From sequence record NC_023719.1: a stretch of DNA of 64,000 nucleotides. The stretch is one strand, 5' to 3'. The position numbers were made by a program, and so were the translations under genes. Below, in pieces: positions 58,381 through 61,143 of the stretch. The notes under the pieces were generated by a model. That model had not been told where the DNA came from. It saw only the letters and a list, made by a program, of their open reading frames with translations, and did no database searches. Numbering within the stretch: the stretch's first letter is position 1; the number at the start of each line of letters is the position of its first letter.

Positions 58381-58515
58381 ATGATGAAATGTTCGTGGTT
58401 TGAATTTGATACTGATTTTACGGATGTATTTTATTGCGAATATACATTTTATTCATTATACACTTTTTTAGATATACGAAAACAACTCCAGAAAAGCAGA
58501 GGATGTCTTACATAA
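58381..58515 (+). CDS. Small hypothetical protein, 44 aa (not in ORF track)
   Basis: RBS GAGAGGTG; MMKCSWFEFDTDFTDVFYCEY... Confidence 0.45.
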   Translation: MMKCSWFEFDTDFTDVFYCEYTFYSLYTFLDIRKQLQKSRGCLT

Positions 58516-58583
58516 ACTAGATTTAGTTTAGATATCATAAAAAATGCTCGGAGCTGATTCGTATAGAATCAGCTTTTTATTAT

Positions 58584-58654
58584 GCGTTTATAGCCAAGTG
58601 GTAAGGCCTCGGTCTGCAAAACCGATATCGCGAGTTCAAATCTCGCTAAACGCT
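58584..58654 (+). tRNA. tRNA-Cys (GCA), CCA not encoded
   Basis: Cloverleaf; anticodon arm TCGGT-CTGCAAA-ACCGA; T-loop TTCAAAT. Confidence 0.9.
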
Positions 58655-58661
58655 TTATAAT

Positions 58662-58737
58662 GGCTCCGTGGTGTAGCGGTTAACACGCCTGCCTGTCACG
58701 TAGGAGATCGCCGGTTCGAATCCGGTCGGGGCCGCCA
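58662..58737 (+). tRNA. tRNA-Asp (GTC)
   Basis: Cloverleaf; loop CTGTCAC; CCA end. Confidence 0.95.
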
Positions 58738-58766
58738 TTAAGTATTTAATGGAAAGAGGTGAAAAC

Positions 58767-59078
58767 ATGTCTAAAGCGTCTATGATTGCTAAAATGCTAC
58801 AAGAGGGTAAAACTATCGAACGTTATAAAGAGGCAGGAAATAGTATGTTACCTATTTTAAAGTCGAAACAACCAGTAACTTTAGAACCAGTTACTATTGA
58901 TATTGTTTTAAAAGAAAATGATATTGTGTTTTGTAGAGTGAAGGGTAATTACTATACTCATAAAATCACTGGAATAAGAAACAATCAATATCAAATTTCA
59001 AACAATCGTGGTTTTGTTAATGGTTGGATATCAAGAGATAAAATCTTCGGTAAAGTTACAAAAATTTGGGATAAATAA
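58767..59078 (+). CDS. S24/S26 peptidase-like domain protein
   Basis: GNSMLP..DIVF..THK..NN.G..NGW..GKV; start ATG 58767 (RBS GAGGTG). Confidence 0.65.
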   Translation: MSKASMIAKMLQEGKTIERYKEAGNSMLPILKSKQPVTLEPVTIDIVLKENDIVFCRVKGNYYTHKITGIRNNQYQISNNRGFVNGWISRDKIFGKVTKIWDK

Positions 59079-59110
59079 CTTACAAAAACAGTTTAATAGT
59101 GAGGAGAATT

Positions 59111-59239
59111 ATGATGATGCATAAGATTGATTGGTTATCAGTAAAATTATTATGTTTAGGTGGCATAGTTACTATTGCATTAACTGAATTAGCTATAATT
59201 ATAGCTCACACTATTATCTGGAGTGGTATGGATGTATAA
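59111..59239 (+). CDS. Small hydrophobic protein, 42 aa (not in ORF track)
   Basis: RBS GAGGAG; single TM-like helix. Confidence 0.5.
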   Translation: MMMHKIDWLSVKLLCLGGIVTIALTELAIIIAHTIIWSGMDV

Positions 59240-59295
59240 TTTAAAGAAGTTCCTTATACATACCGATAGTTTTAAAAAAGGAACTTTATAATAAC

Positions 59296-59371
59296 GGAGG
59301 AGTAGCTCAGTTGGTAGAGCGGCAGATTGAAGATCTGCGCGTCGGGGGTTCAAGTCCCTTTTCCTCCACCA
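59296..59371 (+). tRNA. tRNA-Phe (GAA)
   Basis: Cloverleaf; GCAGA-TTGAAGA-TCTGC; CCA end. Confidence 0.95.
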
Positions 59372-59376
59372 TATAT

Positions 59377-59461
59377 GGGGAGATAGACCGTAAGTGGAAG
59401 CGGGCAGGACTGTAAATCCTGTGAGAAATCCTTGGGTGTTCGATTCGCCCTCTCCCCACCA
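59377..59461 (+). tRNA. tRNA-Tyr (GTA)
   Basis: CAGGA-CTGTAAA-TCCTG; long variable arm; CCA end. Confidence 0.9.
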
Positions 59462-59474
59462 TTTTATTAATTAT

Positions 59475-59550
59475 GGCGCGTTAGCCAAGTGGTAAGGCAT
59501 CCGGCTTTCTACCGGAGATTACACGAGTTCGAACCTCGTACGCGCTACCA
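59475..59550 (+). tRNA. tRNA-Glu (TTC) with pyrimidine at position 37
   Basis: TCCGG-CTTTCTA-CCGGA; CCA end. Confidence 0.8.
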
Positions 59551-59555
59551 TTTTT

Positions 59556-59630
59556 GCCGGTTTAGCTCAGCGGTAGAGCGCTCCCCTTGTAAGGGAGATG
59601 TCGTGGGTTCAAATCCTATAACCGGCTCCA
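59556..59630 (+). tRNA. tRNA-Thr (TGT)
   Basis: CTCCC-CTTGTAA-GGGAG; CCA end. Confidence 0.95.
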
Positions 59631-59654
59631 TGTTATTTTAAAGGAGGAATTCGC

Positions 59655-59858
59655 ATGATATCTAAGCTTATCAATTTGTTTTCTAGAAAGAAAACTCCCG
59701 CTGAATTAGTCCGATTAAGAAAAGTAAGCAATTTAGAATCGCAAGGTGATATGATGTCAGGAGTTATTAGACAATACCAACAAATGAATAATAAACAAAT
59801 GGCTAATCAGATTTTAAAAGAATCTATTGAACCATTAAAGAAAGCTAAATTTAAATAA
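59655..59858 (+). CDS. Hypothetical protein
   Basis: RBS AAGGAGG. Confidence 0.55.
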   Translation: MISKLINLFSRKKTPAELVRLRKVSNLESQGDMMSGVIRQYQQMNNKQMANQILKESIEPLKKAKFK

Positions 59859-59863
59859 TATTT

Positions 59864-59990
59864 GCAGGTTGTAAGTGGAATGATAGCCACTAGAATCCAT
59901 ATAGCACAACGAAAACATGAGGTAGCTCCTCATTCGTCTTAGGTGAACCTCCCTGTGCAAAAGAGAGTTTGATTCTCTCCACCTGCTCCA
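59864..59990 (+). ncRNA. Oversized tRNA-like RNA 1 (127 nt)
   Basis: Acceptor GCAGGT/ACCTGC plus TCCA; T-arm GAGAG-TTTGATT-CTCTC; branched middle domain; no canonical anticodon arm. Confidence 0.7.
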
Positions 59991-59995
59991 TATAT

Positions 59996-60119
59996 GTCAT
60001 CGGTAGTTTAAATAGAATAGGCTTAGATAATCTGCGACCAAAAGATAGTGGACCTAAGTTCTAAGAACAGTCCCATTGTGATGGGGAAAGTTAAGGTGCG
60101 ATTCCTTATCGAGACACCA
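59996..60119 (+). ncRNA. Oversized tRNA-like RNA 2 (124 nt)
   Basis: Bulged acceptor GTC(A)TCGG/TCGAGAC plus ACCA; T-arm TAAGG-TGCGATT-CCTTA; enlarged anticodon-side arm; extra hairpin. Confidence 0.7.
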
Positions 60120-60122
60120 TTC

Positions 60123-60212
60123 GGAGGGTTACTCTAATTGGTAAGAGAACAGTCTTGAAAACTGTCGTAGGTATAAAAGCCGATGGGGGTTCGAGTCCCT
60201 CACCCTCCGCCA
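60123..60212 (+). tRNA. tRNA-Ser (TGA)
   Basis: ACAGT-CTTGAAA-ACTGT; long variable arm; CCA end. Confidence 0.93.
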
Positions 60213-60234
60213 TATAATTTATTAGGAGAAATCT

Positions 60235-60540
60235 ATGAAAAAATATGAATTTAAAGTTAAAGGATATGTTATTCACTCCACTTTAAAGGAGTTTTTCCCT
60301 AATAATAAAATTGTTTATACAATTGACTGTTATTCTTTAACTGGAAGAAATTGGTGTGATTCTGTTGTCACAAATAGTATTGCATTTAGAGTAAATTGGG
60401 ATGAATATAGTAAAATTATGCAAGCTAATTTTAATTGTGTTTTTAAAAAAATGAAATTATATTATGGATCTTACGATGAATGTAAAAGGGCAATTGAATT
60501 TTCAAAAACTCTTATTGTTATGAATAAATTGTTAAAATAA
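60235..60540 (+). CDS. Hypothetical protein
   Basis: RBS AGGAG. Confidence 0.5.
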   Translation: MKKYEFKVKGYVIHSTLKEFFPNNKIVYTIDCYSLTGRNWCDSVVTNSIAFRVNWDEYSKIMQANFNCVFKKMKLYYGSYDECKRAIEFSKTLIVMNKLLK

Positions 60541-60545
60541 ATATC

Positions 60546-60594
60546 AGAAGATAATTGTATTCGAGATATGTCGGTTCAATTCCCAAATCTTCTA
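60546..60594 (+). pseudogene. Truncated tRNA remnant (acceptor stem plus T-loop)
   Basis: AGAAGAT/ATCTTCT stem enclosing GGTTCAATTCC; D and anticodon arms missing; no CCA. Confidence 0.5.
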
Positions 60595-60601
60595 ATTATA
60601 T

Positions 60602-60679
60602 AGGGGATTAAAGATAATTGGATAATCGTCTGGCCTCCAAAGCCATGATACGCGGGTTCGATTCCTGCATCCCCTGCCA
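60602..60679 (+). tRNA. tRNA-Trp (CCA)
   Basis: TGGC-CTCCAAA-GCCA; GGTTCGATTCC; CCA end. Confidence 0.9.
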
Positions 60680-60687
60680 TAAAAACA

Positions 60688-61143
60688 AAAGGAGAATGCT
60701 TAATGAAAATTTTTAGCATCGATATCATACCAAGCTCATAAGACTATAAATTCCTTGAGGTATCTTATGAGCTTGGTTTTTAACTCAAGGAGGTATGATA
60801 TCATGAAAAACAGAAGTCTTGATTATTATCGTCATCACAGAAAACGTATTATTGCTAGAAAAGTTTATATTTTTACTCATATTTGGGGAAATGAATTATT
60901 CGAATATGAGAACAGAGACTATAAACCATTTCCAATTGGAAAATATTCAAAAGGAAAAGTACATTGTAGTTGTAAGGTTTGCAAATATGACAAGCATTTT
61001 GAGATTAAAAAACATAAAGTCAAATCAAAAGAACAAGCAATGAAACAAGAAATTGATGATTATTTTAATAATAAAGAATAACGTTTTACAATTTTCATGT
61101 AATAAGTAAAGGAGAATGTTTAATGAAAATTTTTAGCATTGAT
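60688..61143 (+). repeat. 36-bp direct repeat pair (60688-60723, 61108-61143), each carrying an RBS and an MKIFSID mini-ORF start
   Basis: AAAGGAGAATG(C/T)TTAATGAAAATTTTTAGCAT(C/T)GAT; 2 mismatches. Confidence 0.85.
60803..61081 (+). CDS. Basic hypothetical protein with HCSC-x2-C motif
   Basis: Start moved to ATG 60803 (RBS AAGGAGG); KGKVHCSCKVC. Confidence 0.6.
   Translation: MKNRSLDYYRHHRKRIIARKVYIFTHIWGNELFEYENRDYKPFPIGKYSKGKVHCSCKVCKYDKHFEIKKHKVKSKEQAMKQEIDDYFNNKE

Follow-up and report, generated by a model that had tools for sequence, protein, structure and literature searches.

An unannotated tRNA-shaped element with a replaced anticodon arm in a tRNA cluster of Bacillus phage G

Work on T4 in the 1970s already revealed small tRNA-shaped RNAs in phage tRNA clusters, and no function has been assigned to them. 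The T4 genes rnaC (species 1 RNA, 139 nt) and rnaD (species 2 RNA, 119 nt) form a tandem within the tRNA cluster and share the strand of the tRNAs. In RNAC, a canonical T arm adjoins a 3' strand whose pairing with the 5' end is imperfect; the 3' terminus of RNAD is ACCA. They are not decoding tRNAs, and Rfam contains neither of them. Both RNAs are made during infection, and no role has been assigned to them (PMC3014915, PMC9697503). In KVP40, tRNA-Pseudo-3, tRNA-Pseudo-4 and tRNA-Pseudo-5 (113-124 nt) are tRNA bodies within a tRNA array that carry a structured module of about 50 nt in the anticodon stem; Pseudo-3 and Pseudo-4, two of the three copies, are CCA-ended. YrlA of M. smegmatis is a tRNA-like non-coding RNA with a 7-bp acceptor stem that is cut by RNase P and receives CCA, and the motif of its Ro60-binding strand is GNCGAAN0-1G (PMC4201824). 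An engineered 'tRNA scaffold' for recombinant RNA expression also exists (PMC3401473).

Here we describe two elements of Bacillus phage G, A (127 nt) and B (124 nt), which resemble the T4 pair in that they lie in tandem in a tRNA cluster, on the same strand, and have tRNA-like termini. Element A is the main subject.

The locus and the anatomy of element A

The window, by which we mean the whole stretch of 64,000 nucleotides that was analysed, matches bases 1-64000 of the Bacillus phage G record JN638751 (497.5 kb) at 100% identity. It contains the first of the two tRNA clusters of this phage, which lies on the + strand throughout and has the order Cys, Asp, gp89, gp90, Phe, Tyr, Glu, Thr, gp95, a gap of 264 nt, Ser, gp97, Trp. 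The gap between gp95 and tRNA-Ser is without annotation and holds element A followed by element B. Its small ORFs are frames of 20-41 aa, none of which has a ribosome-binding site. No relatives were found for the flanking ORFs gp95 and gp97; when 5.8 billion proteins were searched, the sole match of gp95 was gp95 itself. The second cluster (403.9-414 kb) contains ten more tRNAs, one of which is a suppressor, together with a tmRNA (412060-412368), and the intact tRNA-Gly(UCC) of the phage is located there at 412560. The features of the locus are as follows, with the basis of each in brackets.

59556..59630, + strand: tRNA-Thr(UGU), upstream member of the array (context)
59655..59858, + strand: gp95, an orphan ORF of 67 aa directly upstream of A (context)
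59864..59990, + strand: element A, the complete gene of the 127-nt tRNA-shaped RNA, bounded by the predicted RNase P site and the encoded CCA (sequence, MFE fold, motif scan)
59864..59870, + strand: 5' strand of the acceptor stem, GCAGGT plus U7 (sequence, fold)
59864-59869/59981-59986, + strand: acceptor pairing of 6 bp (sequence, fold)
59874..59891, + strand: D arm with a 5-bp stem AGTGG/CCACT and an 8-nt loop AATGATAG, which holds the G18-A19 equivalent (fold)
59892..59903, + strand: single-stranded linker of 12 nt, where a tRNA has the single nucleotide 26 (sequence, fold)
59904..59958, + strand: equivalent of the anticodon stem, GCACA/TGTGC, around a 45-nt two-hairpin module (fold)
59904-59908/59954-59958, + strand: strands of the GCACA/TGTGC stem (fold)
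59909-59937 and 59941-59950, + strand: hairpins of the module (fold)
59959..59979, + strand: variable loop AAAA (4 nt) and T arm GAGAG-TTTGATT-CTCTC (sequence, fold)
59963-59979, + strand: T arm alone (sequence, fold)
59981..59990, + strand: 3' strand of the acceptor stem ACCTGC, discriminator U (T59987) and CCA at 59988-59990 (sequence)
59996..60119, + strand: element B, an oversized 124-nt CCA-ended tRNA-like unit (sequence, constrained fold)
60123..60212, + strand: tRNA-Ser(UGA), downstream member of the array (context)

A preliminary description of this DNA had presented A as a CCA-ended tRNA mimic whose anticodon arm is replaced by a branched domain, and the sequence and the minimum free energy (MFE) fold uphold this. 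Every helix that it proposed is found in the sequence, and the overall fold equals the unconstrained MFE structure, which has -35.9 kcal/mol and z = -2.5, with 2 of 200 shuffles folding as well. The module by itself (-14.1 kcal/mol, z = -1.6) has a modest margin over shuffles. The pairing had been called intact; this holds for five helices, which pair perfectly, but not for the base of the acceptor stem, where U7 faces C59980 in a U.C mismatch at the 7:66 position. The connector 3' of the acceptor is 3 nt long, where 2 are expected. The 7-nt anticodon loop with U33 and the anticodon at 34-36 is missing, and the stem encloses 45 nt with two hairpins instead. Since this module replaces the anticodon loop, A cannot read a codon.

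The gp95 stop codon is followed by a spacer of 5 nt (TATTT), which places U at position -1 of A. Another 5-nt spacer (TATAT) separates A from B, and the identical spacer lies between tRNA-Phe and tRNA-Tyr. CCA is encoded by all other tRNAs of the cluster except tRNA-Cys. As the preliminary description had noted, A is GC-rich in an AT-rich genome: the GC content is 45.7% in A and 41.1% in B, compared with 29.9% in the genome, 23-28% in the neighbouring ORFs and 50-56% in the tRNAs.

A keeps the acceptor/T-arm stack of 6 bp and 5 bp. The T-loop invariants G53:C61, U54, U55, R57 and A58 are present, and the change of C56 to U is the sole departure. U56 is matched by an A that replaces G19 in the D loop, forming a compensated A-U pair at 19:56. 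The same paired change is found in a genuine tRNA of the phage, tRNA-Glu(UUC) at 411320-411394, with the D loop GTGATA and the T loop TTTGAAT. This A19-U56 elbow pair of the tRNA-Glu is itself rare in bacterial tRNAs. Because U56 is compensated by A19, the elbow that is read by RNase P and other tRNA enzymes is probably intact in A.

Both strands of the genome (497.5 kb) were scanned for the combination of four features within 60-220 nt: an acceptor stem of 6 bp, a T stem of 5 bp, a T loop of the form TT[CT][GA]A, and NCCA. Ten matches to known tRNAs (nine distinct genes) and element A were returned, and nothing else. On 20 Markov-shuffled genomes, the same scan gave a mean of 0.1 matches. When the T-loop requirement was dropped, matches became common in the genome, so it is the full motif set, together with the placement, that raises A above chance. 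A is thus confirmed as a real, non-random and hitherto unannotated tRNA-shaped element. It had been predicted that tRNA scanners would miss it, and ARAGORN makes no call for A or B. Neither element reaches the gathering score of any Rfam family; at E<=10, A still matches no family in the Rfam search that had been proposed as a check, RF00005 (tRNA) included, and B matches none.

Element B is less regular. Its acceptor stem contains one bulged A, and it has discriminator A and an encoded CCA. The T arm is TAAGG-TGCGATT-CCTTA, and a hairpin occupies the position of a long variable arm. The interior fold is ambiguous (z = -0.6, no better than shuffles). The end of B is 3 nt from the start of tRNA-Ser, and no parent tRNA of B was identified.

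Several other features of the locus were observed. The module of A carries an anti-Shine-Dalgarno-like ACCUCC, and AGAAUC in the linker could pair with the T loop; a role for either is without support. A terminator-like hairpin at 58550-58576 (11 pairs and a T run) lies directly upstream of tRNA-Cys and 3' of gp86, a 44-aa ORF, and could be a leader or terminator arrangement preceding the tRNA array. The annotated tRNA-Trp (60602-60679) receives no ARAGORN call and just 37 bits in Rfam, and its D arm is unusually AT-rich.

Variation, homologue searches and origin of the scaffold

Near-identical copies of the region are present in several metagenome DNA runs and in no RNA run; the sources include bovine gut and soil. 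Contigs from four DNA runs were aligned to 58500-60800. Two environmental variants with about 1% divergence show zero changes in A or B. Of the bovine-gut contigs, one covers the whole of A and another a part of B, both without a difference. The soil variant spans the whole compared stretch except 59544-59605 and has 16 listed differences (19 with unlisted ones), all in ORFs or spacers. Seven of its changes fall within the 204-nt gp95; A, B and the tRNAs have none. If A and B changed at the rate of the sequence outside the RNAs, zero change would be expected with a probability of 0.03-0.07 for A and B together and of about 0.2, which is not significant, for A alone. This invariance of A and B is suggestive of selection, not decisive. 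In a third run, a 151-nt contig has three unlisted mismatches somewhere in 59820-59970. The match of the soil variant contigs ends at 59543 and resumes at 59606, with unlike sequence beyond each end. The soil strain seems to be changed in the tRNA-Glu/tRNA-Thr segment, and its A and B are unaltered.

Relatives of phage G were found via the terminase (55-78% identity) and include G003, a genome of 416 kb that is 99% complete. A search by BLAST with A and B gave nothing in five phage-G-like IMG/VR contigs. A covariance model made from A alone (R1) found ordinary tRNAs only in ten related records, and A is absent from G003 and the other relatives. With filters off, the model again returned only ordinary tRNAs and no homologue of A in the tRNA arrays of the relatives. 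When the region was compared by blastn with INPHARED (50,697 phage records), the only matches were to tRNA-Ser. An exact 24-mer and two degenerate patterns that leave the stems free had no match in viral, metagenome or genome collections. RNR-beta was considered as a syntenic marker and does not serve. By these searches, A is an orphan without a homologue in the collections covered.

Within the phage G genome, R1 found no second copy of A, a search for paralogues gave none, and there is no clear winner among the tRNAs of the phage itself as a parent of A. In the tRNA arrays of G003 and of another relative, G004, the model with filters off placed tRNA-Gly(UCC) at the top in each. Among 41 tRNAs, the G003 gene scored 28.1 bits and that of G004 27.5 bits. 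A plain count of identities puts the same two genes first by a small margin. The G004 tRNA-Gly(UCC) has in common with A the acceptor strand GCAGGT, the unusual A3:U70 pair and U73. Over the T arm and the 3' strand of the acceptor, 19 of 25 positions match, and one of the differences is a compensated pair in the T stem. These comparisons give moderate support to the view that A probably descends from a tRNA-Gly(UCC) of the phage G lineage.

Irregular units were seen in the tRNA array of G004. L012:4461-4524 is a tRNA-like unit of 64 nt with 8 nt in place of the anticodon arm, and L012:4654-4784 is a unit of 131 nt with a 73-nt insert; both score above the Rfam tRNA gathering score. In L012:5333-5720, the 5' half of a tRNA-Ile(GAT), which stops in the anticodon loop, precedes an ORF of about 90 codons, and a complete tRNA-Ile(GAT) comes after the ORF; an insertion seems to have disrupted or duplicated a tRNA gene here. 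Between tRNA-Gly and tRNA-Leu, at L013:1654-1694, lies a stray T-arm-like fragment, GTGGTTCGAATCCCC. This fragment is debris and shows turnover in these arrays.

Explanations for element A

We favour, by a modest degree of confidence, the reading that A is a non-decoding RNA gene built on a tRNA scaffold and excised with the tRNAs. By analogy, the best reading of its kind is that it belongs with T4 RNAC and RNAD and the KVP40 pseudo-tRNAs. A would share the transcript of the tRNA array. One RNase P cut would fall at G59864, and another, at the start of B (59996), would free the 3' side of A. Exonucleases would then trim the short trailer back to the encoded CCA. The product is expected to be a stable L-shaped RNA of 127 nt with a tRNA-like acceptor/T-arm stack and elbow. 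The role of the tRNA body would be to ensure precise excision and to resist nucleases; T4 RNAC and KVP40 tRNA-Pseudo-3/4/5 may be compared, and processing and stability of this kind have been shown for M. smegmatis YrlA (PMC4201824). The activity would reside in the module, or in an uncharged or glycyl-CCA end that binds some partner. What is directly observed, and what this reading builds on, is the anatomy of A, its placement, a motif set that is not random and its similarity to tRNA-Gly. Against it count the 7:66 mismatch, the extra connector nucleotide and the 12-nt linker, which could reflect relaxed constraint, as well as the modest structure of the module, the orphan status of A and the clear tRNA debris in related arrays.

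The same points lead to the chief competing explanation, that A is a dead gene: a duplicated tRNA-Gly(UCC) that lost its anticodon loop to insertions and is harmless. We regard this as possible, and as the less probable of the two. A dead A may still be excised as a by-product of array processing. In favour of a dead gene, A is an orphan, missing from the 99%-complete G003 and all other relatives, and has the scaffold defects listed above. The related arrays hold debris of several kinds (the 64-nt and 131-nt units, the 5' half of tRNA-Ile and the T-arm fragment), and the KVP40 look-alikes are annotated as pseudogenes. Furthermore, the intact tRNA-Gly(UCC) at 412560 makes a copy in A redundant. 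However, the five helices of A are perfect save for U7.C66, and the insert itself makes helices. The GC content is 46% in a genome of 30%, the elbow pair is compensated, and CCA, U(-1) and the array spacers are intact. There are also no substitutions in A or B in variants with 16-19 changes nearby. The preliminary description had argued against decay from the intact pairing and the GC content; the retained tRNA features, the high GC and the invariance among variants do point that way, but their support is only mild.

Two further proposals of that description, a decoy for anticodon nucleases or uncharged-tRNA sensors and a tRNA with a removable insert, fare worse. To our knowledge, the known anticodon nucleases all read the anticodon, and the uncharged-tRNA sensors (RelA on the ribosome, T-box leaders) need anticodon pairing. 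As A is without an anticodon loop, an anticodon nuclease could be held via the body of A only, and nothing indicates a specific target. On the other hand, proteins that recognise the body of a tRNA could be occupied by A through its intact acceptor end, elbow and NCCA, and phage tRNAs are known to counter tRNA-cleaving defences (PMC11464382). We consider a decoy improbable. A tRNA that decodes after splicing is much harder to credit. It is true that the GCACA/TGTGC stem, the 4-nt variable loop and the T arm are in canonical register. However, splicing would need to take out both an 11-nt insertion at position 26 and a second, separate one of about 38 nt in the loop, and no loop with U33 and an anticodon can be rebuilt from the flanks, which makes a removable insert unlikely. 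The insert is also far shorter than group I introns and matches no intron family, and we know of no bulge-helix-bulge splicing system in bacteria.

Another candidate partner is encoded by the phage itself. gp540 (407414-409045) is a TROVE protein that scores 20.5 bits in Pfam, just under the cut-off of 23, and is annotated as TROVE in the record. Seven Y-RNA-like units, none annotated in the record, surround it at 405195-407347 and 412776-412839. They have in common a 5' motif, TGA(A/T)GCGG-N5-6-ACAGTTACTTC, and a 3' motif, ACTGTT...AATAATCTCA, which together form a terminal stem, an internal loop and a helix. In the first of these units, Rfam finds a tRNA-like domain of the YrlA type at 36 bits (E = 2e-6), which is below gathering. 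The presence of a Ro60-like protein ringed by such units, one of them with a YrlA domain, and the KVP40-like overall design of A would suit a Y-RNA-like role of A (and B) as tRNA-scaffolded partners of gp540. Nevertheless, A sits 347 kb from gp540. RF02553 gives no match to A at E<=10, and GNCGAAN0-1G is absent from both A and B; ACGAA is present in A without the flanking G residues of the YrlA motif. The motif of the Y-like locus and CNGCAA are likewise absent from A and B. In a permuted local-alignment test against the Y-like motif, A scores below the mean of random windows. B, which by eye might have been taken for a permuted version of the motif, is no better than random genome windows (P = 0.31). 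We therefore hold this role to be quite improbable.

A narrower version of the non-decoding reading is that A, and perhaps B, is an active tRNA mimic made on purpose, either a glycine-accepting non-decoding carrier or a tRNA-scaffolded aptamer that binds a protein. G1:C72, C2:G71 and U73 are the main acceptor determinants for bacterial GlyRS in the microhelix literature. In the aptamer version, the module would bind a protein of the phage, possibly gp540, or one of the host, possibly a factor that acts on tRNA. An active mimic in either form is unlikely, less so than a decoy. The degrees of belief given for the decoy, the gp540 partner and the spliced tRNA are not meant to add up to certainty with the others, since some of them are special cases of the reading of A as a non-decoding gene on a tRNA scaffold.

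Meaning and comparison with known systems

With A and B, the annotation gap of 264 nt is filled with two RNA-like units. The pair is an independent example, from a Gram-positive system, of tRNA-shaped RNAs in a phage tRNA cluster, and at least one member probably comes from a tRNA-Gly scaffold. It suggests that, in large phages, tRNA genes are turned into carriers for other RNA modules time and again. If A is expressed, A and B, which are single-copy and deletable in the only cultivated megaphage, could serve to study the role of such RNAs. If A is an active mimic, as a carrier or an aptamer, it would help to explain the T4 RNAC/RNAD type. If A is not expressed, it is an instance of how much structure a tRNA gene may seem to have during its decay, and a caution against reading too much into single sequences.

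tmRNA is similar to A in having a tRNA-like acceptor, a T arm and CCA, with the anticodon arm replaced by a helix that leads to other structure. The preliminary description had set A apart from tmRNA, and this is borne out: A has A3:U70 and no G3:U70, no pseudoknots and no credible tag frame, and its length is 127 nt against about 310 nt for tmRNA (RF00023). ARAGORN and Rfam are also blank. A mini-tmRNA was considered and rejected, because the frame from GCA in the stem runs for 12 codons to TAG, as expected by chance, and G3:U70 is lacking. In YrlA (RF02553), the tRNA-like domain is permuted and internal and the ends form the Ro60-binding stem, whereas A is built otherwise. The YrlA gene adjoins the Ro60 gene, and that of A does not. 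In the engineered tRNA scaffold, a foreign structured RNA is placed at the anticodon stem, and the product is processed and stabilised by the cell. As a laboratory construct, it is a mere analogy for how A could work.

The closest parallels are the phage RNAs. T4 RNAC differs from A in that it is without a clear D arm and has an acceptor stem with two U.U mismatches. RNAC and RNAD are proven stable transcripts, whereas A is predicted only. Among 50,697 phage records searched by blastn, no similarity was found between A and the sequences of T4 rnaC and rnaD. When the folds are compared side by side, A has the design of the KVP40 Pseudo RNAs, a tRNA scaffold that carries a module. The Rfam tRNA model gives the KVP40 scaffolds about 50-55 bits and A no score, and the 12-nt linker of A is extra relative to the KVP40 RNAs. 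The KVP40 modules have common ACTGA(C/T)AAG hairpins and CNGCA-type motifs, both of which are missing in A. At the 3' end of its helix, A has GTGCAA in place of CNGCAA, and B has CTGCGA.
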